A stretch of DNA of 64,000 nucleotides from Marsupella aquatica (GCA_973895155.1 OZ316899.1:14449934-14513933), one strand, 5' to 3'. Counted from the first letter of the stretch, positions 9,450-58,300 are shown. Notes: generated by a model from the letters alone, not told the origin. Numbers and translations are program-made.

Positions 9450-9640
9450 CCCACAATCCACGGCTTGTGGCCTCTTCAACTCCAAAGGAAAACGTCATAG
9501 TTTTAATGGAGAGTCACAGCCCACGGCTTGTGGCCTCTTCAACTCCCAAGGAAGACATCATAGTTTTGATGGAGAGCCATAGCCCACGGCTTGTGACCTC
9601 TTCAACTCCAAAGGAAGATGTCACAGGTTTGATGGAGAGT
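9450..9640 (+). repeat. 63-bp tandem repeat x3 (HSPRLVASSTPKEDVIVLMES)
   Basis: Three near-identical units upstream of the RT fragment. Confidence 0.85.
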
Positions 9641-10022: not shown

Positions 10023-10344
10023 CCACACACACAATCTTCAAGAGCAATCAAACAGCAATTGATGCCAATCAAACACACAATCCTGTCCAACGCAATCACA
10101 CACTTATGTCAAGTCAAACGCACCTTGCGCCACAAGGAATCCACGTTACGTACACACAACCTAGATAGCCACACGATAGCCGCTAGAGCTTGTGCTCGCA
10201 AGACTCAACATCAAAAGATGAGACCTTTGAGCCAACACAAAGAGATATAACTATCCCTCACAAACATACACTAACCCTAAAACACTTAGATAACACACAT
10301 ATGAAAGCCCCAAACCTACAAAGTCCGATATCCTATACTATCAC

Positions 10345-11100
10345 TCATACTGGTGTGACAGCCCTTTTGCCCCCATCTCCGCTTGGCTTGCCACCTTTTA
10401 TGAGACAATCCTTACTTAGATGGCCCATGGCGCCACATGTGTAGCACAAGCCTTCAGCTAGCCTCTGCTCCACGAGCGCCTGGTTTTTCACTTTTTGTGC
10501 CGCTGAGGTTCCTTTCTTGAAGTTGTTGGCCTTCCGATTGCGCTTTGCTTCTCCATTCCGAGGCTGAGGATCCAAACCACCGGCCCCCGCCCTCTTCGGC
10601 TGCTTGCGCCTATTCTTGGGACCTTTCGCTTTCCCAACTTCCCGTTTGGATCCCTTGCCACCAACCTTCGCCAAGTCCAGCCGGTTATTCACCAACATAG
10701 TGTCCTTGTCGAAGGCGTCAGAAAGCGTTTTAAACTCATGATGCTTTTCCTGTAACTTTTCCTGTAACTTTTCCTTGAGCAACAGCGGAAACTTCACTAT
10801 AAAGTTATGAAGCTACGTATGTAGGGTCTCCATCGTGGAGAGCCAACTCAAGAAATTCTGTCCACTTTGCTCATAGACCCCGTCGTAAGTTGGAGGAGTT
10901 GGTAGCTCACTTGGAACATACTCCGTCCAACTATCATTCCCCCTCGGGACGCGTTGCGCTCTAACTACCCAAACTAAGTAAGTATTTAATTTGGGCCCCC
11001 TTGTTGTATTCTAGCTAGTCATAAATGAACCGCTGGTCTTGGGTCAACGGACCTAAACCGTTGTCAGCGGTCGGGCCCTTGCGGATTGTATGAGGACGGT
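10345..11100 (-). pseudogene. gag-like gene with CCHC zinc knuckle, internally deleted copy
   Basis: CYTCGAMGHLSKDC; inverted paralog of 17950-18970, lacking its ~18225-18510 segment. Confidence 0.8.
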
Positions 11101-11349
11101 CCTCCAACCGCCTTTCCTTTGCGGGCCGTCTATCCTTAGGTTCTCTAGTGGATTTTGGTGACACTCCCCATGACTTGCAAGCACCATGACCTCTTGGGGC
11201 TGTGGCATCACCCGCATCGCCCTGATTTTGTTTGGTCAAATTATCCACGATGACGTCCGGCTTGACATCATCCTCTAGTTTTGCATCCAACCGTCTTAAG
11301 GCTGGGATCAGTCCCTCTTTTGGGTCTTGACCCTCTCCCACGGATTCAG

Positions 11350-14300
11350 CCTTGGTGTTTGGGTGAGCCTTGCTGGTGGCAATTGGCTGGGGGCAATTGG
11401 CTGGGGCAAGAAAGGTGTTTCCGAATGCTACTTAAGGCTTGAGTTGCAGTCCATTGGGGTTCTATTGGTTTGGCTGTTGTTCTATTGTTTTGCTGTTTGT
11501 TGCTTGCTGTGGGTATTGGATTCGGTGTTGGTTTTGAGCTTTGTGTCTTGGGCCTTTGAGCACCGGGTCTTGTCGGTCCAGGCCCAAGTTTTTTGAGCTG
11601 GAATGCAACTAGTCAAGTAGCTAGTCAACTTTGGAGGTTTGTGAGCTAAGCAGGAGGGTTTTTCCATCAATTTTGATCAGACAACCACTCAAGGGGTTGA
11701 GCTTGACAAGTTAGAGGTAGCGGCCCATGTAGGGTCAGCTACCAGACTCTTGCAAGCAAGCCTACTTGAGGGCATCCATTGTAACCATTGAGAGAAAAGT
11801 AAAAAAAATAAAGGAGTGAGAGTTTGCTCCAAAAAGTGCTTGCCGCCTGTTCCCGTTGCAGCTAGAAATGCAAAGTTTACCCAAGGAGCCCCTAACTTCT
11901 AGTCCTTGCGACATTGGCAACCATACTAGGGATTCCTTGGGGCGATTGGTTGAGATGGGTGGCTATGACAAAGTCGACGGGATTTTGGGTATCGTCATGT
12001 CAATGATGAAAGCCATAAGGAAGGAAGAGCTTGAGGTAGAAAGGGCAAACAGAGAAGCAAATAGAACTACTCAATGTCTCTAGGAGGTTTTGAAAGAGAA
12101 TGGGCAATTTGATGGGAGGAATGTGACAAGCTACTTGAAGTCCTACTTGATAGAGGCCGTTGTCTACAAGTTGAACAAAGAGATGGCGGTGAAAGAGTTC
12201 ATGGTGCTGGTCGAGAAATCTGAGCTGAGTTTAACGGTAAGGACCATCATTGACTTGGCTGAGAGCTGGGAGGACTCTGATCAAAAGATGAAAGAGGAGT
12301 TCCAAGCGGAGGATGCTAATTGGGTCATGCAGGCTACCTTAACTTCTTGGATTGGGTGAATGATAGGAACAAGAAGCTGAAGGAGCCGCAAGAGCTTCTA
12401 AGGGAGTTCAAAAGGAGGGTGTCTCAGTTACCAAAGAGGGATGTGGGAATCATTGAGTTGCAATGCTTGACACTTTTCTTGAGGGCGATTGACGAGGACC
12501 TTTGAGAGGAGCTTGAGAACGCAATGGAGCTATTGGAACCTCAAGAGTTACCTTATCAAATGATTGGAACCAAGTTGAGAAAAAGGTGTTGAAAGTGAGC
12601 AATCATCATTGGAGGCAAGAGCTGGACAAGGAAGCAACCGCTCTCAACCTAAAGCCGTCCAAACCAGCATTAAGAAAAGGGAAGTGAGAACCAGTGAGGG
12701 AAGAGATCAAACCAACAGTGGATGATATTGCCAAAATGATGCAAAACCTGAAGATTTTGGCGGCACATGCCATTGAGAATCTGAAGCCGAGGGTTGCAAG
12801 TGCTCCCGAGAGAAAGCGAGAGATACAGAGTTGGCCATGTATGTGGTGCGACAGCAAGGAGCATGACAAGAGGGAGTGCCTGAACTTGAGGGAAGTTGCG
12901 GATAAGGGGCTGATCAAGGTCATCGGTGAGGTTGGTCATTTGCCAATACTGAGGAACCAATTTTGTTCAACTCCAACAAGGGAGGCATAAAGGCTTTGGC
13001 CGAGAAGCAAGTTGGGAAGCGAGTTGAAGAGGCATCCTCTTCACACTTGGAAGCAAATGTTTACAATGTGGAGACAGAGTGTCATCCTCATCCTCATGCG
13101 GGATACGCAAGATAAGGAAAGGAGGGTCAGATTTGAAGATGACAAATTAAGTGGGAAAGAGTCGGCTAAGGAGAAGCCAATCAGAAAGGATCCGGGATGG
13201 GTGCTAGGTAGGGATGTTGACCAGGCTATGTACCCGGAGGTTGTAGCTGAAAAGTTCTGGAGCCAACATGCTCAAGGGTTTACCAATGCTGAGTTCTTTG
13301 GCAGCATGAGGTGGGAGATCCAGGAAGCAATCTTGGAGAGATCCAAGAGAAAGCGCATTTACAAGGAGGGCCTCACACCTTGATGGGGGAGGCTGGCAAG
13401 TTGAAAATATGAAGTTTCCAAACCTATACTGCTGGGATGTCTGTGGGTTCCGGAAGGGAGCTTGGTGACTCCAAAGAGTCAAGCTTGGGGAAGCCAAAGA
13501 GGGTCAAGACCCTAAGAAGGAAGCCCATGGGCTGTGATGAGTTCATGGATTCCTATTGTGAGTTTGTGGACTCAAATGATGGGTTCTTTGATGCGGAAGC
13601 AGAGCTCATGGGGACCAAAAGCAAAGTTGGGTCCGTGACAAACAGGGAGCTGGTTGAGGAGGAAAAGCGAGAGGGCACTACTGCGCAATCAAGAACCATT
13701 CATGTCATGGGCTTGATGAAAGGGAGCGGCTATGCTTACAGAGATGGATACTGGGCTTGAGCAAGTTTGGAGAGTGAGCTAGTGTCAGCTAGAAGAAATG
13801 GAAGGGAAAGTGTGAGCTCTCATTGATACCGGTTTGAAGATTAACTTAATGGATCCAAAGGTGTTTCAAAAAGGGAATTGGCCAGTGGACAATGAGTTGC
13901 TTTGGAGTATGAATTTGGTGAGCTCGATGAATTTGGTGAGGACTATCTTCGGGGTGGGTGTCCAAATGTGATGGTAAAGTTTGGAAATGTCAAGCAGGCT
14001 TGTAACATTTTTGTTCACGAGCTCTTGTCATTTCCGGTGATACTGGGCATGCCGTTCATTATTGAATGGAGGATGGAGACAAAGGTTCTTGATGACACCA
14101 CCTTCATGCATGGTGAAGGTTTGAAGCAAAGATGGCAAGGAGGTGGTTCAGTTTTTGGCTATTCTACCTGGGAATGAGAGGGACAACAGGGTTGAGGACT
14201 AAGAGTGCTGACTTTGGTCCAGGTTCAAAAAACAATATGGCACTTCACTGAAAAGAGTGGACTGTCTGGCAAAGTGCTCGTTCATTAGCTCCACATGTGG

Positions 14301-41646: not shown

Positions 41647-43006
41647 GGGAAAAGAGGAAGCGAAAGAAGAAAAGATCCGGTTCTAAAAAGAAGGACCTTA
41701 CTTCTTTGTCCTCCTCATCCTCTTCCTCCTCAAGTTCTAGTTCAAGTTCTTCTTCACCTTCGTCCTCTTCATCATCAGAAGATGAATCTAGTAGTAATAG
41801 GAAAGATTGGAAGAAAATATATCATCCCACTAATAATGCATTGAAATCGCTTACAGGCGTGAAGAAAACGATTGACGATCTTAGTGGTAAATTTGACAAA
41901 GTCTCGGTCAATTTGGCAGATAATCGCCCCAAACGTAGACCACTGCCTGTGCAAAGACCGAATGTTTGGTGTGCTCGTTGTGGAGAACGAGGTCACTACC
42001 CAGTGGAGTGTCCACATGTGGGGAGACAAGTGCATTACATGGTAGAAGAATGGGATGACCAAGGTTGCTATGATGTGGAACCTGAAGAGCTTGATTGGTA
42101 CATGGTCAGTAGTCCTTCATTTCCAAGAAGACCCATGGCCCCATCAAGACAACCTATGGGTTGGAATATGGGGATGAATACAATGGCCCGATCAATGACC
42201 ATTAGACCACTAGTCAAACCTCCCATGGATCCTCCTGGAGGATATCCTCCTTGCACAGAGAATCCCAGGAACTTGCTACAATTGTGGGATCGCTGGCCAT
42301 TATGCTCCTGATTGTCCTTATCCTAAAGCTTCGTATCAATATACCCCTATTTGTGGGAATTGTGGAAGTGAGGGACACTTACCCATTGAATGCCCAAAAC
42401 TGGTGCAACCCAAACTGATGGTGAAATATGTTAAGGATCCAGAGAAGAAGGATGTTGCGGAGGTGCGGCTGATTTTCTTGGAAGATACTCACCATGTGAT
42501 GGAGGAGGAGTTGAATGATGAAGACATTTCATCAGTCTATAGGACCACCACTCGAAGTGCCAAGCAAAAAGCTGAGGAGACAAACCGCCAAAGTGATAGT
42601 TTGGGCTCAAAATTTTCTTCGGGTCAATATGACTCTCCAACCACTCCACGTAAGATTAAGGATAAGACCAAGACTAGCGATCCACCGCCTGGGGGTAAGC
42701 AGGTAGAGGGCCTTCCCAAAGAGTTAGACCCTGCGTATGACATGTACAACCCAAAGTATTTTATAAGAGATATATCGTCTGAAGCTAATGAATATATTAA
42801 TCAAGAGATTAAAGCTAATGCACAACATATTGCAATGAAACCCAAGCATGTTTCCTTTGAGGATAAGCCAAATTTTCAGGGAGTTAGAGTAGATGAGAAA
42901 TTAGGCTATGACATAGTTAAGGATGTGGCTAATGCTCCAGCGACAGTAACTTTTGGAGAATTGTTGAGAAATAATGCTTTGTATAGAAAACAGCTAAAAC
43001 CGCTTC
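41647..43006 (+). pseudogene. gag, 3' part (Ser-rich tract, CCHC knuckles) and linker to protease
   Basis: WCARCGERGHYPVEC, CYNCGSLAHYAPDC, CGNCGSEGHLPIEC; frameshifts. Confidence 0.88.
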
Positions 43007-43056
43007 ATCAGCCTATTCATTAAAAGTGTATTTTCTTTTGTTCACAAATCAGTCCT

Positions 43057-43147
43057 GAAATGTACACTTTTATGTCCCCAAATGTACACTTTACGAAGCC
43101 CAAATGTACACTTTTTGATACCTAAATGTACACTTTATAGGCCAAAT
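43057..43147 (+). repeat. Left subterminal repeats (AAATGTACACTTT)
   Basis: 4 copies spaced ~22 bp apart. Confidence 0.9.
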
Positions 43148-43587
43148 CTTATTAGTATATTAATATAATAATATAATAATATAATATAATATATTATATT
43201 ATAATAGTATTATATTACTTATTAGTTCACAAAGAACCATGGGATAGAGATCATACTTGTAAAAACATTTCCGCACAAAGAAGCCCAGGCAAGGACCATT
43301 GATTGATAATGTGTGAAAATAATTATATACAATTGTGTCCAAACTTACAATGAATATCCAGGGCTGGCACCCATTTTTACTATCTAATGGGCTTAACATG
43401 AGTCAGATCTCTAAACAAAGTGCTCCTTACAATATTTATTTGAGCACATGCCTTTGTCTCCTTTACTATCTACCCTAATGTCATGGTTGCAACTCCCTTT
43501 ATCTTCAGGGAGATGAAATTTGGTGGTGTTGTTCCTAACTGCTATAATCTCCTGCAAAAAGTGTCTGGGATTTTCTCTATACAGACC

Positions 43588-44544
43588 TCAATATTCCCAT
43601 CCTACAAATGATCTAGCAAGTGAGGTGACAAGTGCATCGTCAAGTTCCACCTCAGGACGTAAGCTACATATACGGTGCTTCACAGCCCAAGGGATCTCAT
43701 TGCTATTGAGGTCCAGCACACTATGCCTATACTGTGACTTCCAAATTTTTGTTGCACATCTCTTACTAAGTTGATCATAAGTAATCTCATTTTTTGCCTT
43801 GTCTCTCTTAATGTGCAATAGAGACCACTTTGGAGAGTTTAGGAGAAGATAACAACGAATGTCACTTGCATGTGACAGTTTCTCAAGACATGGCCAAAGA
43901 ATTGTTAGAAGAAAATTGTCTCCACGATTGGCATGCGTGTAGGGCACTGGAAATAGTCCGGTCATGTCTGGGTTGGCAAATGCCTTCAAGGGGGAGTCAT
44001 CCACAAGGAGTGTGTTGGTTTCATCATATAGATTTCCAAATGCACTCCATACCACCCGAAAATCCTTCAATAGCACATTTGCCTTTCCATTTATAATGTC
44101 ACGCCTTTGAATGCCTGTGTCAAAGGCTTCCACCTGTGTGAATACAAACTTCAGTTTCAATTGCTCCTCAATTGTGAACATCATGTTCAACATTTTCACT
44201 GTTCGCGGCATCCCAGCACATGTCCAAATTGCAATGTCAAACCGGTCAAAAACCAACTTTAGAAACTCATGGAGCCCTGGCCTCCCTGTATACATGCGAC
44301 TAGTTCCATTTGATCTATCCCAATGCACTCCACTTGTGGTGACAATATTCCTGGATGTGCCCTTGCTTTGGAATTTAATAGAATCCCAAAGTATTTTATT
44401 AAGGTCCAAAATCAGCAACTTCCGCTTGACGGGACCAGGTCTCGATTCTGCAAGTGCACCAAACACCATTCTCAAAGAAAAGACCAAAAGTGAACTTTGG
44501 ATTAGGATTGTCTCAGTCCAAAAATACAAGACAATGGCTGACAA
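43588..44544 (-). CDS. FCP1/NIF-family (HAD-like) phosphatase-like protein
   Basis: RKLLILDLNKIL, RPGLHEFL..F..FDIAIWT, LKDFRVVW, NTLLVDDSPLKA..NP. Likely ATG ~44468; the frame continues past the TGA to ~43411. Confidence 0.85.
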   Translation of the reverse strand: MSAIVLYFWTETILIQSSLLVFSLRMVFGALAESRPGPVKRKLLILDLNKILWDSIKFQSKGTSRNIVTTSGVHWDRSNGTSRMYTGRPGLHEFLKLVFDRFDIAIWTCAGMPRTVKMLNMMFTIEEQLKLKFVFTQVEAFDTGIQRRDIINGKANVLLKDFRVVWSAFGNLYDETNTLLVDDSPLKAFANPDMTGLFPVPYTHANRGDNFLLTILWPCLEKLSHASDIRCYLLLNSPKWSLLHIKRDKAKNEITYDQLSKRCATKIWKSQYRHSVLDLNSNEIPWAVKHRICSLRPEVELDDALVTSLARSFVGWEY

Positions 44545-45041
44545 AAAAGAAAATTAACCTACATACCATTTTTAGAAGCCTCACAATGTGTAGACGGATA
44601 TGGAGACTTTAATTGGTGAGCGCATTCTGTGAGATTGAGAAGTATTTTAGATTGATATGAATAAATACAAAGTCAAAGGCTGAATTTCATTCCAAAATAA
44701 GAGATCCGTATTCAACCCTAAATGTCAGCACCAAGCTCCTGTTGGATTTCAAAATTGACATCTGAAGTACTTTGTTCTACCCAATAAGGTGAAGTCCAAA
44801 CAGGAGTTATCAACCCCAATTCTCCACTCTTATACTCCTCCTTATTGAGAATTGAAGGAGCAGCATCCAATGATATTTCTTGGCCTCAATTTGGCCCACT
44901 TTTCCACACGTAACATCATGCGTTGCATTCCAATGACCTCCATCCAGTTGATCCAACTCTATTTCCTTTCTTTTTTGAGAGCGGAAGGACAATAGGACTC
45001 CCCGAGTGTGAACAAACAAACACCGATTTGTCATCAGAAGC

Positions 45042-46480
45042 TTAAAAGAGTGTGTCAGGACAAGTTGAAGCACCTGCCTGGTTGTCAGCAGCCGTTGATG
45101 CATTTCCTCCTGGATTGATCGGAATGTCAGGCAATCCGCCAGTCTCCCCCTCGGTCTCCCCCCGAGTCAATTCTTTAGTTTCAGCTTCATTTGAATCTCC
45201 AAGCCTCATTGCGCCTTCATTGATCAGATTGGTTGAAGAAAGATGATCAAATGTATCAACCCTTGCTCCTTCCAGTTGCTCCATCTGTCCTCCCGACGTT
45301 GTTGGATTGGGATCATCCTTGTCCAAGTTATCATCAACTTGAACTTCATTGGGCCCCGGAGGGATGTCATCTAAACCAGATGAACGGTTTGGTGCAAGTC
45401 CAATATCATCATCTACATCGTAAGGCTCACCTTGACCAACACGGTCATCCAAATTCTTGACATATGCCTCCTCTGATGCCTCTACGCCTTCAGCCACTTT
45501 GTCAGCAACATCTTCAGACTCAGAACCATCGGATTCAACAGCGACAGCTACAGCCGCAACAGTGGTAGCCCATTGTCGAGAATTTTCAGCAAGTGATTCA
45601 CAATGAGCTTTAAGTGAGGGAACTCTCTCGCAAAGGTAGGAAACAAAAGCTTCCACCAAATGCCTCTCGGAGTGAGAGTCACAATAAACAAAGCATTCCC
45701 TATCGCAAAAAAATGATGTCTTCATGACTTGGCCACCGGAGAAAAAATCTAGAACCAAATCTCCCGGTTCTGACAAGGATTCAATAATCCTTCGGATCAT
45801 CCGCGTGGGTTTGGCATGAGGATTAACCCACCCTCCGCGACTGCCAACTGTCTCAAATTGAGGGGCCATATTCATAATCTTGACGGCCTCTTCCGGGTCC
45901 AAAACCACTTTAAGGTCGTCGTTTTGTGTCCCCTCATCTGATTCCTTAGCCTTCCCCTTTCCCTTGTCGATCTTGCATACTTTGTAATCAACATCCTTTG
46001 CAGTATACAAGAATTTTGGCTTTGGATAGTTGGGCTTGAAAACTTCATTCCAATTGACGTCTTCATCTCGAGAAATCCCCGCAAAGATAACTTCTTCAAT
46101 CCCCCACCCCAACATGAGTCATGAGGGTGCGGTTGATCATCTTGAGAATAGTTCCCATACTCAATGTGAATGGTCAAAGCTTTCTCTTGTCCCAGTTTAC
46201 GAAGGGCACCATGGACATTCAATGCAAGTTGTCCAGGATGAACTGTTATCGTCACAACAATCGTGGGATTTTGTGGAAGCTCCACAATGTATTCAAAGAG
46301 AACAAGAATCTCTGCTTCAGTCCATTGTTTTTGCGGAAGCCGGCTAAAATCAACAATGGCAAGAGGGCAGGTCGGAGGAGCTTCTTGCAATGACTCTGGA
46401 TCAATGGTCTTCATGAGATTGTCGCTAAAAAATGTAGCCCATGGTAGGGTCCAAGAACGTGATCCTCCGCCAAATTTCTG
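45042..46480 (-). pseudogene. N4/N6 DNA methyltransferase-like (N6_N4_Mtase, beta-type order) exon with frameshift and acidic tail
   Basis: HAKPTRMIRRIIESLSEPGDLVLDFFSGG...DRECFVYCD matches the motif X/I region KP..L..LI...S.PGD.VLDPF.GSG. No canonical DPPY/SPPY seen; LAIVDFSR is at the expected place. Confidence 0.7.
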
Positions 46481-46489
46481 GCAGTATAT

Positions 46490-46800
46490 ATCAGTCCCAG
46501 TCCAGAACAAAACTAGACAGTATCAGTGGAAAAATAATCTATTGAATGTGTATGAATCCATTTGGACTGGGACCATCCCAGTCCAACGCAAAACTAGGTG
46601 ATGTCAATGGAAATATTCTACTGAATGTGCATGAATCCATTTGGACTGGGACCATCCCAGTCCAACACAAAACTAGACGATATCAGTGGACAAAGATTCT
46701 ACTGAATGTGCATGAATCCATTTGGACTGGGACCATCCTAGTCCAACGCAAAACTAGGCGATATCAGTGGAAATATTCTACTGAATGTGCATGAATCTAC
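46490..46800. repeat. ~80-bp tandem repeat (~4 copies), probably intronic, with hairpin TTGGACTGGGA-CCA-TCCCAGTCCAA
   Basis: Stem at 46562 and 46641 (perfect) and 46722 (1 mismatch). Confidence 0.9.
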
Positions 46801-46834
46801 TATATTGTACCCATCAAGCAGTAACACTTTGTAC

Positions 46835-47770
46835 CTGAAATTTTTGATTGTCTTAAGCGTTTGTTTTGTTGTCCCCATGTTTTGGCCGGCTAGGTTTTCC
46901 ACATTCCACAAATTGTCGCCTAGCATGAATGATTGTATCTTTGAAGCATGACTGAAACACCATCGTGCTATTGATCGCATTAGATTGCATTGAATGCTCA
47001 ACTAATATTGACGATGGTGTTCGATGAGATAATATTCTTGACTTTCGAAATTCCAGCTTTTTTGCCAATGCTGTCAGCTTGGCATCCTTGTTTGCCCATT
47101 CTCGAATCCATCTGGCTGCTCTAGCCGAATGTTGACCACTAATGGCAAGGAATTGAACCTCGCCCTTTTTCACGGCTGCTACAAAGTCCCTCCTATCTGA
47201 TTCTGTGTTGTCATACTGCATTAGGTTTCTATGTTTTGTAGTGTAAGGAATCAAGTTTGCTATGTGTGGTTCATGCCCCGGATTTCTTATCATGGAATTG
47301 GCCACCTCCTTTACATGGTCTGCATTCAACATTCTGTAACAGAGTCTTGCCGACGCAGGGAAAATACTGTCTACAGGAATAGAAAATAACGAATTGATCC
47401 CAAACGTATAATATTGCTCCATTTGTTGCAATACCTCATTACCTTCTAAGACCTTCTTCTCCTCAGGAGCGTCCAACTGCTCGTCCACATCTCGTGAATG
47501 CACTGTCAGGTTTTCTGTAGTGTCATCCATGATGGCACTGTCAATTTTCTGTTTCTTCTTCTGTCTTGGTCTCTTTTCACTTGCACTCGGCTTCTCAACC
47601 AGACATTTCTTCTCAACTGGCTTCTCAACTTGGCTTCTCGTACTCAGCTTCTCGTACTCGGCTTCTCGTACTCGGCTTCTCGTACTCGGCTTCTCGTACT
47701 CGGCTTCTCGTACTCGGCTTCTCAACTCGGCTTCTCGTACTCGGCTTCTCAACCAGAAGTTTCTTCTCAA
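46835..47770 (-). pseudogene. ParB/Srx(DndB)-like domain exon
   Basis: IPVDSI...YRMLNADHVKEVANSM...G...QFLAISGQHSARAA resembles R......V..L..S...G...IIDGQHR..A; ends at a GT donor near 46834. Confidence 0.6.
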
Positions 47771-48620
47771 CCGGAGGTTTCCTTTGGCTTTGTTTTTGTT
47801 TTCCCATTGCTCTTTGAGAGGTCGCTGCTGTAGTTCCCACGGTCTCTGTTGTAGGTTCTGGAGCTTTCTCTGGCGCTTGCTCGGGCACAGGGTTTGTATT
47901 CACCGCTGGAAGCTTTCTCATCTTGGACAATGATTCTATCCATTGCTTTGCTTTGACTAAATCAAACTTGGGAGAAAATGCAACATCCTTATCAATTAAA
48001 ACACCAGGCTCCTCCGACTCCAACGATAACAATCCAGCTTTCTCAAGTAAATTGCTTAACGTCCAGGTAGTTGCAAAAGAAAAATTGCCTTGGTGCTTCA
48101 TCATGTTGAGTTTCAAATATTGAAGCCCATACATAATGTCAACTGGAAGCATACCAGTTACCCCGACAACCAACTTCTTTGTGTCATAGGTCTTTGGAAA
48201 AAATCCCATTGACAAAACGCTCAATTCCCCACTTGCGTGCCATTCGACATTGAATTCAGAGGAGTATGCCTTTGACAGAAGGTTAACTTTAACCCAACAG
48301 GACTTATCGTGCATCTCGAGAATGACCGTATTCATCTCTCTCCCTCCAATGCCAACAGAGACCACAGGTCCGCAAACAAAAGTCAGGCTATCATTTCCTT
48401 AGCACTTTAAGGTCAAAACAGGTTCAATCGTGGTTGATGGCACTTCATTATTAAGCGGGGTTCTTGAGAACTCAAGCCCCCATCGAAAGCGTGGGGATCT
48501 CTCATCTAGTAAGAATTCATCCAGGCAGTGGGTCGGTGCAATCGTGGGTTTGGAAACAACAAGATCGCTCCCTGCATCATAAATGTCATCCATGTTAGAC
48601 TTAAAACCTTTAAAACATTC
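47625..48620 (-). pseudogene. N-terminal region of the same minus-strand cargo gene, unknown domain
   Basis: ORFs 48399-48920 and 47625-48365 share a frame across one TAA and shift frame within the 14-bp repeat. Confidence 0.55.
47632..47752. repeat. 14-bp tandem repeat GGCTTCTCGTACTC (~8 copies) inside coding sequence
   Basis: Read directly. Confidence 0.92.
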
Positions 48621-48629
48621 GAATAACTC

Positions 48630-48942
48630 TTGTTGGATTAGGATGGTCCTAGTCCAACTTGAGATGGTTTTAGACTTGCTCCTACAATCGAGATTCAATC
48701 TCCTAGATGGATTAGGATCATCCGAGTCCAACTTTGGATTGGGATGGTCCGAGTCCAACTTTGGATTGGGATGGTCCGAGTCCAACTTTGGATTGGGATC
48801 ATCCGAGTCCAACTTTGGATTTGGATGGTTCGAGTCCAAGTTTGGATTTGGATGGTCCGAGTCCAAGTTTGGATTGGGACGGTCCGAGTCCAAGTTTGGA
48901 TTGGGATGGTTCGAGTCCAACTTTGGACTTGGATGGTCCCAA
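48630..48942. repeat. 27-bp tandem array (TTGGATTGGGATGGTCCGAGTCCAACT)
   Basis: ~9 copies; each unit is an imperfect palindrome. Confidence 0.92.
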
Positions 48943-49099
48943 TCCTCTAAGACTTAGGGAGGATAGGTGATGGATACTTACTAGGGATTCGTGATTGAAA
49001 TTGTCTGGAGTCTTCGAGTGCCAGTTCCATACTGTCGCTCATAGAGGAGAGGTCAAACTCCTCCGTTTCTTCCACATAGGACATCACAAGGACGCGATT

Positions 49100-49720
49100 C
49101 GCTTCCATCTTTCTAACACATGGCAGCGTGACACGTGGCATCTTAGCAGGCGTCCGATCTAGGGCAATAAAAAAGAATGGAGGAGGAAGGCGGAAGGCGG
49201 AGGCAGGCGGAGGCGGGGAGGCGGAGAGAGAACGGAGAGCGGAGAGCAGAGAGCAAGGAGAGCGAGAGAGTGAGGAGGAGAGCGAGAGAGCGAGAGAGCG
49301 AGAGAGCGAGGAGTGAGAGAGCGAGAGAGCGAGGAGTGAGAGAATGAGAATAAGGTCCTGGTTGGACCTCTCCATCCCTTTACCCCCTCCTGCCTCACCC
49401 CGGCCTGTGTACGGCTGGTTGCCTCCTTCTACTGCGTACGGCCTGCTCTGGCGTACGGCCTGCTCCTGCATACGGCCCGTTGCCCTCACCTTGCATACGG
49501 CCTCCTTCCTTGATGTCCTGCCTACCTAACAGCCTTCCATGGTAGTCCCCGCGCAATTAGGCTCGTGAAGATAAGGTGTGTCCGCAAGCTAAGGTGAACG
49601 CGTACTCAACCCTTATCTTCACGTGATTTCCGGTTGAGCCGACTCGAGCGAAGGGTATAATTTGGGAGACGCCCACTTTGGAGCTCATTCTTGTTCTAGT
49701 TTCCCAAATCTGAGCTCCAT
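49100..49720. promoter_or_regulatory. Putative divergent promoter/5'UTR region between cargo (-) and transposase (+)
   Basis: CpG-rich with a GA/CT microsatellite; lies between divergently oriented ORFs and the two 27-bp arrays. Function inferred. Confidence 0.4.
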
Positions 49721-50184
49721 GTAATCCGGAGTGGAGTTTCTCTTAAAGTGTTATGTATTGAGCCACTTACCTTCATTGGGTCAGCTTAGCCAGCTTCTTG
49801 ACTTTTGGAGTCCTCTCAGTTTATCTTTTACAGACATGTGTGGTTTAGGGTTTAGTTTGTTTTTTACTCCCAAGATTTAGTGGCATATAGCTTGTATTTC
49901 AAGGTTTTGGGAAGTTTTTACCATTATTCAAACAACAATGTATACCCCTTGGATGTGATATTCATCTTCTACCAGATCTTAATACTAAGGTGAGTATAAG
50001 GTTAATGCATTCAAATATAAGGTTCCATTATTTCATGAAACTGTATGTAGACATTAGGGTCTGCCTTAAGACCATGCAAACTTTAGGCTACACCATATCT
50101 AGGGAGATCCGTAAAATACGGGGTCTTCCTAAATTTGGATTTTTCTTAGCTTAAGATGTTTGAAGTTTATCTCCCATTACATCA

Positions 50185-50890
50185 TGGGTTGGTCTAGGAT
50201 GGTCCTAGTCCAAGTTTGGATTCGGATGGTCCTAGTCCAAGTTTGGATTAGGATCATCCGAGTCCAACTTTGCATTGGGATCATCTGAGTCCAACTTTGG
50301 ATTGGGATCATACGAGTCCAAGTTTGAACTTGGATGGTCCAAGTCCTAGTTTGGATTGGGATGGTCCGAGTCCAACTTTGGATTGGGATCATCCGAGTCC
50401 AAGTTTGAACTTGGATGGTCCGAGTCCAACTTTGGATTAGGATGGTCCGAGTCCAACTTTGGATTGGGATGGTCCGAGTCCTAGTTTGGACTTGGATGGT
50501 CTAAGTCCTAGTTTGGATTGGGATGGTCCGAGTCCAACTTTGGATTGGGATGGTCCGAGTCCAAGTTTGGACTTGGACGGTCCAAGTCCAAATCCAGAAT
50601 CGGAGGATCGTAGTCCAAATCCAGACTCAAAGGATTGCAGTCCAAATCCGGACTTGGATGGTCCCAGTCCAAATCCAGAATCGGAGGATTGTACTCCAAA
50701 TCCAGACTCGGAGGATTGCAGTCCAAATCCGGACTCAGATGGTCCCAGGCCAAATCCAGAATAGGAGGATCGTAGTCCAAATCCAGACTCGGAGGATTGC
50801 AGTCCTAATCCAGACTTGGATGGTCCCGGTCCAAATCCGGACTCAGATGGTCGTAGTCCAAATCCGAAATTGGAGGATAGTAGTCTGAAT
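50185..50890. repeat. 27-bp tandem array, second block (~25 units, two subtypes)
   Basis: Same unit as 48630-48942, then the variant AGTCCAAATCCAGACTCGGAGGATTGC. Confidence 0.92.
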
Positions 50891-50951
50891 CAAAATTTGC
50901 ATGAGTTTGGTTTTAACCCATTTTTTCAGTGTGTAGGATAACAGGAAAAGG

Positions 50952-53900
50952 ATGTCTCAAAGGTTTTCTAGGGGCGATGATGTTACCTTGACAATCGATG
51001 GTTACGATGTTGGAAATGGGACAGTTCAAAAGACAGATCCGCGAGAGAGTGTTCAAAATATTGTGCTGGGAGAGAATCGAATTGGGGTTCTCATTGAGAA
51101 GGCCTTTGGTGAGACTAGGAAGCTCCCTTTTCCAATGCCTAGGGCAGAAAATCTTCATGATGCCATTGACTCATGTGTCATTTGGGATATGCCATGTGCA
51201 TATCGATTTGCGGATAAGATTACTCAAAAATGCATCAGTATTGGTAGTTGTTCGACTCGAAAAGATAACAACATCCATAATTTTGCAAATGTAGAGGAGG
51301 ATGCTTCGACCACCCTAAGGCCAGGCGATGAGGTTGAAATGTTTATCTCTGGCCATTGTGTGGCCTTTGGAGTTGTTTTCAAGACCGATCCAATGGAGAG
51401 ATGTCATAACATATTACTCGGTGAGTCTCGGGTTAGTGTAAAAGTCACAGATGTGATTCATGGTAGTAAGACTTTACCTTACGCACATGGTGGAGCTGCA
51501 ACAATTGAAGAGGCAAAGGGCTCCTGGGTTCTATGGGATGTGGTTGACGTCCACAATAAAGTATGGAATGTTGATATTGATGGGAGCAACAAATCTTCCT
51601 CTAAGAAGCAGAAGGACAAGGCAAATTTTGTTTCACAGTCTTGTTCGGCGAACACCATGGACACTAAGTGTGACTATTTTCATCGGGAAAACTGGATGTC
51701 AGAGTTGGTTGAACTCTACACTGGTTTGGATCAAACCAAAATGGTTGCCACTGGAACGATCACTGTCCCTCAAGTGACAGCAGCAGTTGATGATGAAATT
51801 CTTGGTGATAACCATGTTGGGATTGCTGTGAAAGATGTCGTGGCAGCACAATACTTTCCCAACATCCACAAGGGAGTAGTGAGTTTGATTCGATGGCGGA
51901 TTGATTCAACAAAACTAGTTGCAAATGGAAAATTCTTGTCAGACATTTTGGTGGAAGGTTCTGAGAGGATGGACTCAATGGATAGGGATGAACTCAATGC
52001 GGATGTAAGTGATAGAGGAGTACTGCGTTCAAGGCCGTACAATTTTAACAAGAGGAATCAAGTAGATCCGAATGAAAAGAAGAGGAGGTTGTTGGAAACC
52101 AAGGCAATTTCAAAAACAACAGAGGCATCAATTGATGACGTGAAAAGAGAAAATTGTTGCAAGCAAAAATGTTGTCTCATTATGCCAAGGGAAAACATCG
52201 AAGATATTAGGATGGAATTTCATGGGATGTCAAGCGAGTCAAAAACGTCACACGTTTTCAACCTCTTTCACTATAGAGAGGATGATGTTCGTGATAAGGG
52301 ACACCATGTTCTTAAGGGTATGGTCTTATACAGACATGCATTTGCAATTATCCACGGTTTTAGCCACACCAAATATTATGATTACAAAAGGAGATATGTG
52401 GAGGGTTGCAAGATTGAGTTCCATGGCAATACGGGCTTGATGAAAACAAGGGCAAATACCTTGCATGCACGAGCTCTGTTGGAGGCTTTTTTGACTCAAA
52501 ATGCAGAGCCCATGCCTCATATGCCTTATGGAGGGGCACATGGGACAGACTCTACTGAGTACCGTCTTCCGGCGTGTTACAAGAAGCTAGAGATTCTGGA
52601 AGATGTGAGAACAAAGATGAAGGAAGAAGGGCTTCCTCTTGTCACAGAGAATACTCTCTACAAGATCTGGAGCAACTCATTTGCAAACTTCAGTTTTCAT
52701 AAAGATGGTGCATTTGCCAAGTGTACTCTTTGTTGTGAATACAAAGACAGTTTGATGCGAGAAAGAAGGAAAAAAGAACGTGCTGAAATTGAAGAAAAGC
52801 GAGCGCAACATCTTTATGAGCAAATGTCACGTAGATATGTTTACTACGCTCATCGAGTGATGGCCAAACAACACCCAGGAGAATATCTTTGCATTATCCA
52901 CGACAAGATGGATCAAGCAAAGACATGGATTCCAAAAATGGTCAGTACTCCTAAATCTCTTTCGGGTCATGGAATGCCGCTACCTATTGCTCTCATAGGG
53001 ATGTTGACCCACGGGAGGGATTCAGGAGTTTATGCACACTTTAGTGTCACTGGCCTTTGGCCAGGAGATGCCGATTTCACAGTGACATCCTTGGCTAAGT
53101 GTCTTCGAGACCTTGAAGAGTACAATGGAGACAAGACAGGTGACATGTTGGATGGCCTTCATTGGGAACCTCACATACCTTTCTTTCAAGCCCTACTTGA
53201 CTTTGAAGCATTTTTGATGGGTTATTTGGAACCAAAGAATATACCGGTGAATAGGTATATTGGTTCTGAAGATGGAGCTGAGAGTCGGACTGAGACCGTC
53301 CCAAACCAACAAGATGAGGATGAAGGAGAAGACATGCAAGGAGAGCAAGGCAGTCCATCGTTCAAGCCCTTGCCAAGGCACCTAACATTGCAGATGGATA
53401 ATTCAGCAAAGGACAACAAAAACCAGACTGTCATGGCATTTTGTAGCGAGCTTGTGAGTAGAGGAGTATTTGAAACTGTTCAAATGTCTTTTCTAATGGT
53501 TGGTCATACGCACGAAGATGTTGATGCACTCTTTTCAAAGGTATCATATCAAGTTCAGCACAAAGAAGTTGCAACCCTCCTTGCTCTTATGGCAGAGGTA
53601 TGGGAATGCGAGAGCATTCATCAAGTTCCCAGATTGATACAAGAAGTTGCATCTTACAAAGAATATCTTCAAACTTTCAAGGTGAAAGATATTCAAGGTC
53701 ACTCAAAACCTGTATCATTTCTTTTCTCTATGAGAGATAATGTACCAATATTTCAGTATAAGTCCCATGTAAAGCAAGCTTGGGCTCCAGTTGGTGGAAG
53801 GTGCATTTGGGCAACAGATCTAACAACAAATTCTCTTCTTTTACCTAGTGGAGAGCCCTTAGCTAAATCCATTGGAGAGATACACAAAAAATTTGAAGAG

Positions 53901-54458
53901 ATTATCCCATTTCTTAACAAGTACCTTGATTTTTTGAGAAGGAGTTGCACTGATGAGACATCTATAGCATATAAGGAAAGATTTCCTCTTGTGAAATATT
54001 GGGAGAGAATTGTGGAGTTGTTGACAAATGGGCTCGCACTAGAAGGGGAGGGAAGTACTCAATTTCCCTTGAAAAACAGATTTTGGCCTAAGACTAACCA
54101 CGGCACTGGTTACAAGGTCAACCAACCGGAACAAAGTGGTCCTCCAAGTGAAGATGCGGAGAATGCAGAGATAACGGCTCTTCAAAATGAGGTCTTGGAA
54201 GAGATGGAAGATCAAGCAACACCATTTGTTGGATCTCGAGCTAAGAGAGAACAAGGACGATGGATTCCTTTACAGGATATTTGTGAAGGAAACTTTGTAT
54301 TTCTTCGACCCGAGGATGATTGGGAGAATAAAAATGGTGGAGGTCATTTCTGGTTGGTGAGAGCTTTGGGTTTGGTGGACCCAAAGCATGAAGTCCCAAC
54401 TACATCTTCAACAAACCCTTCTCTGCCTCGACAGGTACGCTCCAATGTTCCCAGTTGA
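50952..54458 (+). CDS. Sola1-like DDD transposase, 1168 aa; C-terminus probably continues to 54711
   Basis: CCKQKC, FAKCTLC, CIIHDKMDQAK, LQMDNSAKDNKN, SFLMVGHTHEDVDALFS; three N-terminal repeats of a Transposase_23-like module; inside TIRs with a 4-bp TSD. Confidence 0.88.
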   Translation: MSQRFSRGDDVTLTIDGYDVGNGTVQKTDPRESVQNIVLGENRIGVLIEKAFGETRKLPFPMPRAENLHDAIDSCVIWDMPCAYRFADKITQKCISIGSCSTRKDNNIHNFANVEEDASTTLRPGDEVEMFISGHCVAFGVVFKTDPMERCHNILLGESRVSVKVTDVIHGSKTLPYAHGGAATIEEAKGSWVLWDVVDVHNKVWNVDIDGSNKSSSKKQKDKANFVSQSCSANTMDTKCDYFHRENWMSELVELYTGLDQTKMVATGTITVPQVTAAVDDEILGDNHVGIAVKDVVAAQYFPNIHKGVVSLIRWRIDSTKLVANGKFLSDILVEGSERMDSMDRDELNADVSDRGVLRSRPYNFNKRNQVDPNEKKRRLLETKAISKTTEASIDDVKRENCCKQKCCLIMPRENIEDIRMEFHGMSSESKTSHVFNLFHYREDDVRDKGHHVLKGMVLYRHAFAIIHGFSHTKYYDYKRRYVEGCKIEFHGNTGLMKTRANTLHARALLEAFLTQNAEPMPHMPYGGAHGTDSTEYRLPACYKKLEILEDVRTKMKEEGLPLVTENTLYKIWSNSFANFSFHKDGAFAKCTLCCEYKDSLMRERRKKERAEIEEKRAQHLYEQMSRRYVYYAHRVMAKQHPGEYLCIIHDKMDQAKTWIPKMVSTPKSLSGHGMPLPIALIGMLTHGRDSGVYAHFSVTGLWPGDADFTVTSLAKCLRDLEEYNGDKTGDMLDGLHWEPHIPFFQALLDFEAFLMGYLEPKNIPVNRYIGSEDGAESRTETVPNQQDEDEGEDMQGEQGSPSFKPLPRHLTLQMDNSAKDNKNQTVMAFCSELVSRGVFETVQMSFLMVGHTHEDVDALFSKVSYQVQHKEVATLLALMAEVWECESIHQVPRLIQEVASYKEYLQTFKVKDIQGHSKPVSFLFSMRDNVPIFQYKSHVKQAWAPVGGRCIWATDLTTNSLLLPSGEPLAKSIGEIHKKFEEIIPFLNKYLDFLRRSCTDETSIAYKERFPLVKYWERIVELLTNGLALEGEGSTQFPLKNRFWPKTNHGTGYKVNQPEQSGPPSEDAENAEITALQNEVLEEMEDQATPFVGSRAKREQGRWIPLQDICEGNFVFLRPEDDWENKNGGGHFWLVRALGLVDPKHEVPTTSSTNPSLPRQVRSNVPS

Positions 54459-54959
54459 ATGGTGGAGGCCTAAACACTCTAAACTTGATGTGACTTAGAG
54501 TGCGCGGTATCTAAATTGTTTCATGTCCACTAAGACATGGGAACGAGATCCAGGGTTTGGTGAGAATACTCAACATTGGCAGTATGCAAATTCTACAATG
54601 TATGGTTTTAAATCTGGAATGAAAGAAGAAAACATGGCGGGCAGAGGTTTGAAGATCCCTCGAAATGTTCTACAAACTGTCCAAAATTATCTTCAAAGGA
54701 TGGACAAGTAGACTTAGTTGTTAGAAGCTATAATAATTAAATAGATAGTTACTAGTTTTTATGTAACTAAGATAGTCACTCATTCAAACATAGTAATTTA
54801 CGTACTAGTTATTTACTATTCTAATAGTTTTAATTTGATACTATCTCCTCATTTTCTAAACTTTTGATCATTATGAATATGAATGTTTGCTTTTTCTACA
54901 TAATTAAAAATATTTTTCTATTCATTCCTTTCTTTTAAATGATTATAAGAAGAGTTGGT

Positions 54960-55290
54960 AGGCAAATGTACACTTTTTAGGCCAAATGTACACTTTGTTG
55001 CACTAAAAGTTACACTTTCTAGACCAAATGCACTTAAATGTACACTTTTTAAGCCAAATGTATGCATTTTTCACTCAGATGTACACTTTCTAGGCCAAAT
55101 GTACTCAAATATACACTTTTAAAGCCAAATGTGCCTATTTTGATGTTCAAGTTTACACTTTTCATTGCCCAAATGTACACTCTTTGGGCCAATTGTACAC
55201 TTTTCTATCCCCAAATGTACACTTTTCATTGGCCAAATGTACACTTTTCCAAGCCCAAAAGTACACTTTTCATTGCCCAAATGTACATAA
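54960..55290 (+). repeat. Right subterminal repeats (AAATGTACACTTT)
   Basis: ~14 copies, same orientation as the left array. Confidence 0.9.
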
Positions 55291-55330
55291 ATCAAATAAT
55301 AATACACTTTTAATGAATATGCTGATCTTC

Positions 55331-58300
55331 TTAGTTCTAGGCATAGGAAATATAAAATGCCTCTGGTAGCCGTTAATTTTGCTGAAATAGAGGACTTTGG
55401 TGCCCCAGATGTTGAACTCCAAATTGACGGTTGTTTAGTTAGAAGTGTCCCTATTGATGGCGGTTCGGGAGTTAATATTATGATAGCACAAACTGCACAT
55501 TCGTTAGGATTTACTAAGTATGAATCCACACCTAGAGTCCTTAGGATGGCAGATCAATCTACAGTTTTTCCATTAGGTAAATTAGGGAATATTTAAGTTT
55601 TAATTGGAGGCTTACCTTTTATTTTGAATTTCCTTGTTATTGTCCCGCCCACCCAGTCAACTTTGCCTATTTTGTTAGGTCGCCCTTGGCTGTACAAAGC
55701 TAAGGTTAAAGTTAATTGGGCTAATAAAACATTTTCCCTTGGTTATCCTAAAGTCAAGTTGTCCTGGGATAAGATCCAGCATTTGGGGGAACTATGTCTT
55801 CAGACCCAGGTTATACATCCGATAATAGTACCTCTACAATTGATTCACGATGGGTGGATGCGATGATGAAGCTCAAGGAGGACGAATTTAGCTTTGAGGA
55901 GGACGTGCGCTACCTCGAAGTCTACACTTACGAAGATGCAGTACCAGCTGAGCATGTGAGGAAAGTAGACAAAGTTGGTACTTCCTCAAGGTCTGAACTA
56001 CTTGCCCCAAATCCTCAAGCGATATTATCTCCTAAAGTAACTTCTCAGGTTATAACCAGATTTTTATTAGAAAATCGGATCAGTCTAAAACTACATTCAC
56101 AACTGATTGGGGCACCTATGCATTTTCTCGCATGCCCTTTGGGTTGTGTAATGCCCCAGCAACTTTTCAAAGGCTAATGACTGTTATTTTTCAGGATTAC
56201 CTGCGTGATTTTTTGGAGATTTTTATTGACAATTTTTGAGTTTTCAGCGGTGAAAAGGATCATTTGGAGAAACTGAGGAAGACCTTTGCTAAGTGTCGTG
56301 AGGCTGGCTTGTGTTTGCACCCTGAAAAATGTTTCTTCGGGATGACAGAGGGCATTTTATTGGGTCATAAAATTTCTCAGAGAGGCATTGCTGTTGATCA
56401 TGATAAAATCACAGTCGTCCTTGCCTTAGAAGTGCCCACTAATTTGCGTGAGTTAAGGGGATTTTGGGGGTATGTTGGCTATTATAGACAATTTATTGAG
56501 GGTTATTCTGTTCTCTCCACACCTCTTAATCAGCTTCTTAAAAAAGGATGTGCCTTATGAGTGGAATGAAGCACGAGACAATGCCTTCCTCACCCTCAAA
56601 CATACGCTGACTGTAGCTCCAGTTCTTCTTCCTCCTAACTGGTCAAAAGAGTTTCATGTTTTCGTGGATACTTCTAAGTTTTGCATAGGGATTGAGTTGA
56701 GTCAGAAAGATGAGCGTGAAAAGCACCACCCTATTTACTTTGCCAGTCGTCAACTCAATAGTATCGAGCAAAATTATTCCACCACTGAACGTGAAGCTCT
56801 GGGCATTGTTTTTTCTTGTAAAAAATTCCATCACTACCTCCTTGGTTATGACACTGTTTTTCATACTGATCATAACTCTCTTAAGTATCTTTTTAATAAG
56901 GCAGATTTGTCAGGCCGAATTGCACGCTGGATTCTACTTCTTCAAGAATTCCGGTTTAAAGTGGAGGTGCGCCCTAGCAAAAGTCATGTCAATGCTGATT
57001 ACTTATCTCGGTTGGAAGGAGAAGGTGATACCAAGGCAATTCCCGATGTGTTTCCTGATGAGGAGTTATTTCACATGGAGGGTGAACAATCGCTTTATGC
57101 TGAGATTGTTTCTTTTCTCATTACTGGTCAACCTCCTCAACACATGAATGCGGAGCAGCAGGCAGTTTTTGTACATAAGGCGGGACCTTACACCCTTATT
57201 AGAGGTGTGCTCCATAAAACCATGCTTGACCTTAAACTTAAGCGATGTTTGGAGACGCATGAGGTGTCCAAAGTGATTAGTGCATTGCATGAAGGGGATT
57301 CGGGTGGACATTTTGCTGTGGACACTACGGTGGCCAAAATTTGTGATGCGGGCTATTGGTGGCCCTCAATGCATAAGGACGTACTTGATTTTATTAAAGG
57401 GTGTGACCCTTGCCAACGCATTGGAAAACCTTTACTCAGTGGAAGATGGCCCTTAGTCCCCATAATGCCCTTAGCTCCCTTTGAAAAATGGGGCATTGAT
57501 TTTGTGGGCCCCATACAACCGGTTACTCAACGAAGGAGGAATCGCTACATCATAGTGGCAACCGATTATGCCACCAAGTGGGTGGAAGCCGAAGCAGTAC
57601 GGAAGGATGATGCAATTGTTATAGCACTTTTTCTTTTTGATAATATTATCACTCGCTATGGGTGTCCCTTAGAGTTGGTTAGTGATAGAGGCACTCACTT
57701 CCTAAATTGCACTATAGAACTGCTCACCACCACTTATCTGATCAAGCACCGCAAAACTACTCCCTATAACCCTAAGGCAAACGGTTTGACGGAGAGGGGT
57801 AATGGCATCATTTGTAAAATCCTCACAAAAATCGTTCTGCACATAAGAGTGATTGGGACATGAAGTTAGCATCTGCACTATGGGCGTATAGAACTGCACA
57901 AAAGATCACCACAAAAAGAACTCCTTTTTACATGGTTTATGGGATGGACTCTATTCTTCCTATAGAGTTCAGTTTGCCCACTGCACGAATTTTGGAAGAC
58001 AGGCGTTTACCCCCTGAAGCAAGTCAATTAATTAGACTAGCCGAATTAGAACACTTAGAGGAAAATTGTCTATATGCACTTACACATACTCATGTTCAGC
58101 AAGCACATAGGAAAATGACTTATGATAAGAAGTTGAAGCCCACAACCATTAAGGAAGGAGATTTAGTTTTACTATATGATAATCGTTATTTGAAATTTCT
58201 AGGGAAGCTCCACACTAGGTGGGGGGGTCCCTATGTAGTTAAGAATGTTTGGCCTAATGGTAGTTTACAACTTACCACTACTGATGGAGAAGAGTTAATT

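Follow-up and report, generated by a model that had tools for sequence, protein, structure and literature searches.

Among described systems, the closest to the element reported here is Sola1-1_Ec32 of the brown alga Ectocarpus, a 21.5-kb transposon whose transposase, with Repbase Sola1-1_PPa as its own best match, is encoded on one strand and a 1104-aa ParB-like plus N4/N6 methyltransferase gene on the other (PMC12477816). Sola2 elements of dictyostelids carry Fanzor1 and form chimeras of 10-15 kb (PMC3627910), and Plavaka elements of Bostrychia combine a methylase-SET gene with a ParB-oxygenase gene flanked by inverted-repeat arrays, for which the authors propose self-binding or self-modification by the element (bioRxiv 10.1101/2025.02.11.637652). 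The element analysed here occupies 12,320 bp (positions 43007-55326) of a 64-kb stretch of sequenced Marsupella aquatica DNA (GCA_973895155.1 OZ316899.1:14449934-14513933; hereafter the window). The combination of ParB and DNA-methylase genes in Sola-1 is already known from the brown alga, and the window element is a land-plant variant of it. An original prediction for this DNA had taken Sola elements to be transposase-only, a premise outdated by the Sola2-Fanzor1 chimeras (PMC3627910) and by the ParB-methyltransferase gene of Sola1-1_Ec32 (PMC12477816), and had named as one ground for refutation that the transposase should group with a superfamily in which the cassette was already known; Sola1-1_Ec32 shows that this kind of cassette is indeed known there (PMC12477816).

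The likeness to Sola1-1_Ec32 comprises a block of the Sola-1 transposase (22 of 50 residues), a 4-bp target-site duplication (TSD), the large size of the element, and ParB-like and methyltransferase domains on the opposite strand. The algal element differs in encoding these domains as one 1104-aa fusion and in having 282-bp terminal inverted repeats (TIRs), a total length of 21.5 kb and no reported NIF gene, whereas the window element has 26-bp TIRs, a length of 12.3 kb and separate ParB-like and methylase-like open reading frames (ORFs), adds a PH-like N-terminal domain and a third, NIF-like gene, and has lost the catalytic motifs. The two cassettes are likened here by domains and strand, and a shared origin is not thereby implied. 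The red-algal Plavaka giants (Bostrychia, Chondrus) similarly combine N6-adenine methylase and ParB-like accessory genes, with inverted-repeat tandem arrays beside the ParB-like gene, but they belong to the Plavaka/KDZ transposase superfamily, their ParB is fused to a 2-oxoglutarate (2OG) oxygenase and their methylase to SET, and they carry no NIF gene. Sola2-Fanzor elements are comparable in their 10-15 kb length, 4-bp TSD, short TIRs and possession of a non-transposase gene (PMC3627910), and in a transposase layout of CxxC, then D, D and a third motif of the H-x-x-x-D-x-D type; however, they are Sola2 rather than Sola1 elements, and their Fanzor1 (TnpB-like) cargo is unrelated to the window module. 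Further likeness is found to RK2 KorB and other ParB-family regulators and to phage ParB-methyltransferase loci, in the ParB/Srx N-domain (Z 7.3 to KorB) and in palindromes upstream of several genes. These regulators differ in being prokaryotic and in having kept a defined helix-turn-helix as well as the arginine motif that binds CTP, whereas the window motif reads SGQHSxRAA and DNA binding by its protein is a prediction. A limited literature search turned up no account of such a lineage in land plants, of ParB-like and methylase-like domains split between genes, of the PH-like domain, of a conserved third gene of NIF type, of catalytic motifs being lost, or of palindromes placed close to each gene's start.

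Boundaries of the element and its assignment to Sola-1

The element is delimited by 26-bp TIRs matching at 25 of 26 positions, with complementarity reaching 34 nt at 88%, and the TIR sequence has only two matches in the window against 0 expected by chance. The host ORF at 42403-43006 stops one base into a codon and, minus one CTTC, runs on in frame from 55333 for 87 further codons, a continuation that spans a retropepsin-like D-G-G-S-G stretch. A weak CCHC knuckle lies upstream of the insertion and RT_RNaseH, Integrase_H2C2 and rve domains lie downstream (56472-57863), so that, with the retropepsin-like stretch, the host can be identified as a Ty3/Gypsy retroelement that was entered between gag and protease. 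These observations show a cut-and-paste insertion into a Ty3/Gypsy element, producing a 4-bp duplication, and they bear out the original prediction of exact boundaries, 26-bp TIRs, a CTTC duplication and a restored host gag-pol frame, as well as its view that the whole unit moved as one.

The transposase ORF has a CxxC at residue 591 and a candidate catalytic triad of D651, D816 and D858, and is colinear, without internal stops, with residues 4-1151 of P0003 (43% identity), a 1250-aa protein encoded on a ~4-kb contig. Its relatives are bryophyte proteins, of which Riccia sorocarpa has dozens and Ceratodon a single one. The domain recognised in it by Pfam is DUF7869, on whose nature no statement was found in Pfam or in the literature searched. 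Residues 813-862 are identical to Sola1-1_Ec32 at 22 of 50 positions without gaps, in a comparison aligned by eye to the sequence printed in the paper's supplement and carrying no statistic. This block spans the second and third catalytic Asp and also contains an M-V-G-H-T-H run, and a D-x-x-x-Q first motif and the upstream CxxC are likewise common to the two transposases; the motif layout also resembles that of the dictyostelid Sola2 transposases, whose sequences are printed in the supplement. Because of the ungapped block together with the 4-bp duplication, the element is read here as a probable member of the Sola-1 group. The predicted long + strand DDD transposase of Sola type was accordingly recovered, and the block shared with Sola1-1_Ec32 places it specifically with Sola-1. 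The C-terminal piece of the transposase (the W-W-R-P-K-H region), which is separately conserved, is 51% identical to P0003. An intron at the C-terminal frame change was considered and rejected, as the sole GT..AG pair spans 21 nt.

Recurrence of the accessory genes and selection acting on them

The arrangement in which the transposase diverges from ParB-like, methylase-like and NIF-like genes, in that order, recurs at the Riccia sorocarpa loci L001, L002 and L008. At locus L005, three uninterrupted ORFs of 461, 441 and 299 aa follow the same order and adjoin a DUF7869 gene, and locus L006 holds the same cargo genes in the same order as three separate intact ORFs. In the lycophyte Diphasiastrum complanatum (L007) the cargo genes again keep this order, with no transposase within the 21-kb locus examined. 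A locus of the moss Ceratodon contains NIF pieces and a weak ParB-like match, with no methylase-like match, and at L003, of a more distant Riccia subfamily, no ParB-like or methylase-like gene was seen.

Between L001 and L008, Riccia copies 92-96% identical in DNA, the ratio of non-synonymous to synonymous change (dN/dS, NG86) was 0.33 for the NIF gene, 0.43 for the methylase-like gene, 0.11-0.20 for the ParB-like gene and 0.44 for a 'mid' ORF (L001 4098-4577) that separates the ParB-like from the methylase-like coding part. The pair as a whole showed 49.8 synonymous changes in 742 sites and 59.2 non-synonymous changes in 2645 sites, far from a neutral ratio. These comparisons show an accessory module that is conserved and under purifying selection. 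The original prediction had proposed a cargo-carrying Sola lineage, to be checked by whether the same cargo recurs with intact frames and dN/dS below 1, and both the proposal and the expectation held: the same genes lie in the same order in several plant lineages (L001/L002/L008, L005, L006, L007), with intact ORFs and, in the Riccia pair, dN/dS of 0.11-0.44.

L003 contains an inverted duplicate of the N-terminal two thirds of the transposase (L003:3155-5306 and 9617-12803) and, downstream, only a segment that corresponds to the NIF protein's C-terminal extension. Inside the L005 element a 2.6-kb (TCTA)n microsatellite (L005:4251-6840) lies between the transposase and the cargo genes, and an array of 79 bp x 15 adjoins the transposase 5' end.

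State of the window copy

There are stops or frameshifts in all four genes of the window copy, namely the three cargo genes and the C-terminus of the transposase. The ParB-like gene has an in-frame TAA (48399-48401) in the conserved PH-like domain and a frame change in the 14-bp linker repeat, the methylase-like gene has a 1-nt deletion in a G-run at ~46100 and a stop at 45042 that is premature relative to other copies, and the NIF gene has a stop (43588-43590) where other copies have a sense codon. The linker repeat unit is not a multiple of three and the repeat length differs among copies, which makes it inherently prone to cause frameshifts.

Contigs from four public runs, representing two organisms, were aligned to 43450-49440 (5,991 nt), a stretch that lies outside the transposase. 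These runs, whose kind is not on record, hold 32-44% of sampled words, so the contigs derive from other copies or close relatives, and their summed word depths over the stretch reach the thousands, an indication of many copies. Positions 48400/48401 belong to the sense codon AGA in every contig, the base missing at 46100 is present in most contigs, and the stops ending the methylase-like and NIF ORFs are Ser codons in other copies; the family is intact at the four covered sites, all of which are in cargo genes. The 40 best-supported differences to the contigs include 23 non-synonymous but only 5 synonymous ones, the pattern expected of neutral decay following insertion, and the contig joints are repeat-length variants rather than introns. 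The window copy itself is dead or dying, one decayed member of a multi-copy family.

In run X2 the summed contig depth over the part of the window within the NIF gene (43650-44449) is about tenfold that over the remainder of the element, and in X1 and X4 it is 3-6 times as high. This excess may reflect non-autonomous derivatives or other families with the same segment.

Predicted folds and motifs of the accessory proteins

When 1.84 billion representatives were scanned in full by HMMER with the ParB-like segment as query, only 83 relatives were returned; the long ones are 500-570-aa proteins on ~2-kb, transcript-sized contigs, with the domain C-terminal, and they end at the same point as the window ORF. 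Pfam, run on the ParB-like ORFs and their relatives, did not detect ParBc and gave nothing useful, and a ParB-family profile run against PDB sequences gave low-complexity matches only. In an AlphaFold model of one long relative (mean pLDDT 80, ~95 in the C-domain), residues 312-489 adopt a ParB/Srx fold. The top 30 Foldseek rows for this model are all ParB, Noc, KorB, PadC or sulfiredoxin (best E 5e-3), and the VIA-align Z values are 7.5 for PadC, 7.5 for pNOB8 ParB-N and 7.3 for KorB. The ParB-like domain is therefore confirmed by its predicted fold, while being invisible to Pfam. Residues 15-165 of the same model weakly resemble PH/PTB domains (Z 4-5); the 'unknown domain' of the original prediction is PH/PTB-like, by a weak fold match. 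A conserved motif, A-I-S-G-Q-H-S-x-x-A-A, which in the window reads ISGQHSARAA within the ParB/Srx domain (47114-47143), aligns with the ParB GERRxRA box with the first two arginines absent, such that between GERRxRA and (A)ISGQHSxxAA(K) the G and the R-A-A part alone correspond. The annotation of Calypogeia fissa likewise includes a ParB-like protein.

The methylase-like protein is predicted to have the permuted Rossmann fold of the beta class, in which motif IV precedes the motif X/I region. The window fragment matches N6_N4_Mtase in Pfam at E 8e-7, with most relatives falling below the gathering score, a profile built from the family finds M.RsrI at 1.6e-7 across motifs X and I, and Foldseek with the model (pLDDT 48) gives M.RsrI at 2.4e-9, the top 40 rows all being beta-class N6A/N4C enzymes. 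As a protein query the window ORF gave no homologue within the length range searched; the intact Riccia ORF (428 aa) gave at least 72 paralogues, all from Riccia, of which several gene models run into the NIF domain. The position of motif IV, on the predicted first strand, reads DFSRLP in the window (46334-46357), DLTHP in ~30 Riccia paralogues, EAQD in L005 and DLHG in L006, and (D/N/S)PP(Y/F/W) is absent there from all four lineages compared. The position of motif I (FxGxG) reads DFFSGG in the window (45732-45752), followed by an acidic tail, and (D/E)-x-(F/Y)-(S/T/C)-G-G across the four lineages, with GG alone invariant.

The ParB-like and methylase-like ORFs are separate in L005 and L006, and some Riccia gene models join both. 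Because the window ParB-like ORF ends where its transcript-sized homologues end, and because the L005 and L006 ORFs are separate, the two are most likely two genes in the window element rather than a fusion. Of the - strand cassette originally predicted, the divergent arrangement and the ParB, methyltransferase and NIF domains were upheld, but probably not the single ParB-methyltransferase gene. A short intron at the frame change in the methylase-like gene was rejected, given that the Riccia ORF is continuous there and most other copies have one extra base. A further conserved 'mid' domain (C-C-S-D ... G-x-I-P-D-V ... F-R-P-x-N-G-L) stands ahead of the methylase fold at L001:4098-4577, L005:11488-11900 and L006:5206-5700; it was searched for in the window element and not found.

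The NIF-like protein likewise departs from its enzymatic relatives at the catalytic motif. Its motif I is D-L-N-K-I in the window (44389-44412), not DxDxT, and reads DLNKI, DIEGL, EIIGV and ELNGV in the window, Riccia, L005 and L006, respectively. DxDx(T/V) is absent in the four lineages, the acid/base Asp never being present and the nucleophile Asp having become Glu in two of them, and the Lys and Asp that come later in the domain do not vary among the four. For the NIF phosphatase of the original prediction, catalysis is not supported, with DxDxT lacking in the NIF domain and the nucleophile also lost in two lineages. All three cargo proteins therefore appear to keep their folds and to lack the usual chemistry, the ParB arginine motif being altered as well in every lineage examined. 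No report of NIF/CTD-phosphatase cargo (CTD, the C-terminal domain of the polymerase) in DNA transposons was found in the literature searched. Two NIF-like genes are present at each of L006 (L006:9021-10091 and 10590-11375) and L007 (L007:4459-5460 and 12078-12506), which suggests duplication of part of the module.

Subterminal repeats and internal palindromes

The element has four copies of the 13-mer AAATGTACACTTT just inside its left end and ten inside its right end; there are none elsewhere, and 0.15 would be expected. At both ends all copies lie on the + strand, making the two sets mutually direct rather than inverted, with a core, TGTACA, that is itself palindromic. A second repeat class is internal: the 25-bp palindrome TTGGAyTsGGA-N3-TCCsArTCCAA has 57 half-site matches, all within 44497-53302, against 0.28 expected. 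These fall at the NIF ORF 5' end, just upstream of the methylase-like ORF (three perfect copies) and in the arrays at the ParB-like and transposase 5' ends, with single sites also within the methylase-like and transposase coding regions. In Riccia the palindrome is different (core GSGACGCRTCBC), with 64 matches confined to L001 1200-15893 against 0.02 expected, and lies shortly before the starts of the NIF, methylase-like and transposase genes as well as between the coding parts of the ParB-like and methylase-like genes. L006 has a third, distinct palindrome, again in arrays. The layout is conserved and the sequence lineage-specific, as would be expected of a co-evolving protein and site. The coordinates of these and other features are given in Table 1.

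Table 1. Features of the Marsupella aquatica element and its immediate flanks (window coordinates).
Feature	Position	Strand	Details
Left TSD copy, CTTC	43003-43006		Identical CTTC directly outside both TIRs
Left terminal inverted repeat	43007-43040	+	26-bp core 43007-43032
Left subterminal repeats, 4 x AAATGTACACTTT	43058-43136	+	22-bp period; presumed transposase-binding sites
NIF/FCP1-homology (HAD) gene	43588-44544	-	PF03031 E 8e-16 over full profile; UBLCP1 1e-10
Beta-class N6/N4 methyltransferase-like gene, two frames	45042-46510	-	1-nt deletion in G-run ~46100; acidic tail
~80-bp repeats x 3.8	46495-46797		Three perfect 25-bp palindromes, TTGGACTGGGA-N3-TCCCAGTCCAA; between ParB-like and methyltransferase-like genes
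PH-like + ParB/Srx-fold gene	46853-48593	-	ATG at 48593; PH-like domain to ~47900; ParB/Srx 46856-47545
14-bp tandem repeat, 9.6 copies	47619-47750		In linker of ParB-like gene; frame changes here
27-bp tandem array of imperfect palindrome	48627-49026		Ends 34 nt upstream of ParB-like ATG
Central spacer between divergent gene sets	49027-50108		GA-rich, low complexity; putative bidirectional promoter, from its position
27-bp palindrome array, ~30 units	50109-50913		Ends ~40 nt upstream of transposase ATG
Sola-1 transposase ORF (probable), 1168 aa	50952-54458	+	DUF7869 E 6e-42, over residues 805-939
Transposase C-terminal remnant, ~90 residues	54433-54705	+	Other frame; in-frame TAG near 54496
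Right subterminal repeats, 10 x AAATGTACACTTT-like	54964-55269	+
Right terminal inverted repeat	55293-55326	-	26-bp core 55301-55326
Right TSD copy, CTTC	55327-55330		Matches left copy

Possible functions of the accessory module

The identity of the element and the existence of the conserved module are considered highly probable. A possible explanation for the module is that its accessory proteins act as non-catalytic binding modules, in which the ParB/KorB-like protein would bind the element's own palindromic arrays as operators, and the methylase-like and NIF-like partners would join it in tuning or shielding transcription of the transposase and cargo from the central divergent region, with the transposase itself recognising the subterminal 13-mers. 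Taken as a whole, the account of a decayed Sola-1 copy with a conserved module and a non-catalytic ParB/KorB-like operator circuit is given a slightly better than even chance. The specific mechanism, in which the ParB/KorB-like protein and two pseudoenzyme partners control or shield transcription, is put forward only tentatively, as is the broader picture of a private circuit of three pseudoenzymes in land-plant Sola-1 elements, with a lineage-specific palindrome upstream of the element genes co-evolving with the ParB/KorB-like protein; each of these is a possibility that is more doubtful than the overall account.

Several considerations weigh against this operator-circuit account. The placement in Sola-1 comes from an alignment made by eye and not from a phylogeny, and the dN/dS values derive from a single pair of copies (L001 and L008). 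A helix-turn-helix is not demonstrated in the ParB-like protein, whose DNA binding is predicted, and the palindrome arrays might serve as binding sites for the transposase or a host factor, or be no more than ordinary internal satellites. The model of the methylase-like protein is of low confidence (pLDDT 48), and its motif assignments come from alignments at ~20-30% identity, even though both motifs do fall on predicted strands; a divergent active site is a possibility. Lastly, for this genome the gene models and promoters are predicted from sequence, and so is their expression.

One alternative, close to the original prediction, is that the accessory proteins mark the element's own DNA, with the ParB-like protein targeting the element and the methyltransferase-like protein depositing N6-methyladenine or N4-methylcytosine (6mA/4mC) on it. 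The full beta-class fold and the motif X/I region are retained, the gene is under purifying selection, and phage ParB-methyltransferase fusions are real enzymes, the same function having been proposed by the Ectocarpus authors for the fused protein of Sola1-1_Ec32 (PMC12477816). However, motif IV reads DFSR, DLTH, EAQD or DLHG and never (D/S)PP(Y/F/W), and only GG is invariant in motif I. Self-methylation is disfavoured because motif IV is absent in every lineage examined, the four compared here, and self-marking is accordingly judged unlikely. The same retention of folds with loss of catalytic residues is typical of binding pseudoenzymes, and would suit a role in counter-silencing, the other function suggested in the original prediction, in which the NIF-like pseudophosphatase and methylase-like protein act as decoys that bind the polymerase CTD or the chromatin and methylation machinery, the ParB-like protein serving only to target them. 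The nearest solved relative of the NIF-like protein, UBLCP1, is a nuclear phosphatase, and the N-terminal domain resembles the peptide-binding PH/PTB fold, but that match is weak (Z 4-5), no host partner is identified, and the data offer no connection between the module and silencing; this reading is improbable to about the same degree as self-marking.

A role in partition or tethering, in which the ParB-like protein on parS-like arrays would hold the excised element or its two ends together, or tether it to chromatin during transposition, receives some encouragement from the partition proteins among the best ParB/Srx matches (pNOB8 ParB, PadC, Noc) and from palindromes that are arrayed as parS sites are. 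It is nevertheless thought less likely again, as SGQHS stands in place of the GERR arginines that bind CTP, a ParA partner is lacking, and the arrays adjoin gene starts, not element ends. The least probable reading by far is that the - strand genes are captured host fragments in neutral decay, of the Pack type. Every gene of the window copy does contain stops or frameshifts, and non-synonymous changes from other copies outnumber synonymous ones by 23 to 5, but the listed defects are private to the window copy, the three genes recur in the same order with intact ORFs in at least five lineages at 20-35% identity, and dN/dS is 0.1-0.4; because of the synteny and dN/dS results, neutral passenger DNA is treated as excluded.

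The operator-circuit account, if true, would mean that the methylase-fold and NIF-fold partners have been retained for transcription control or for protection from host silencing. The present findings extend the association of algal giant transposons with ParB and DNA-methylase accessory genes to land plants, including liverworts, a lycophyte and probably mosses, and add to the module a third conserved partner, the NIF/FCP1-like protein. The loss of catalytic motifs, in every lineage compared, despite purifying selection argues against the popular idea of self-methylation. These elements offer a testable model of a eukaryotic DNA transposon that may regulate or shield itself, together with matched pairs of protein and site from several lineages that could be used in binding experiments.

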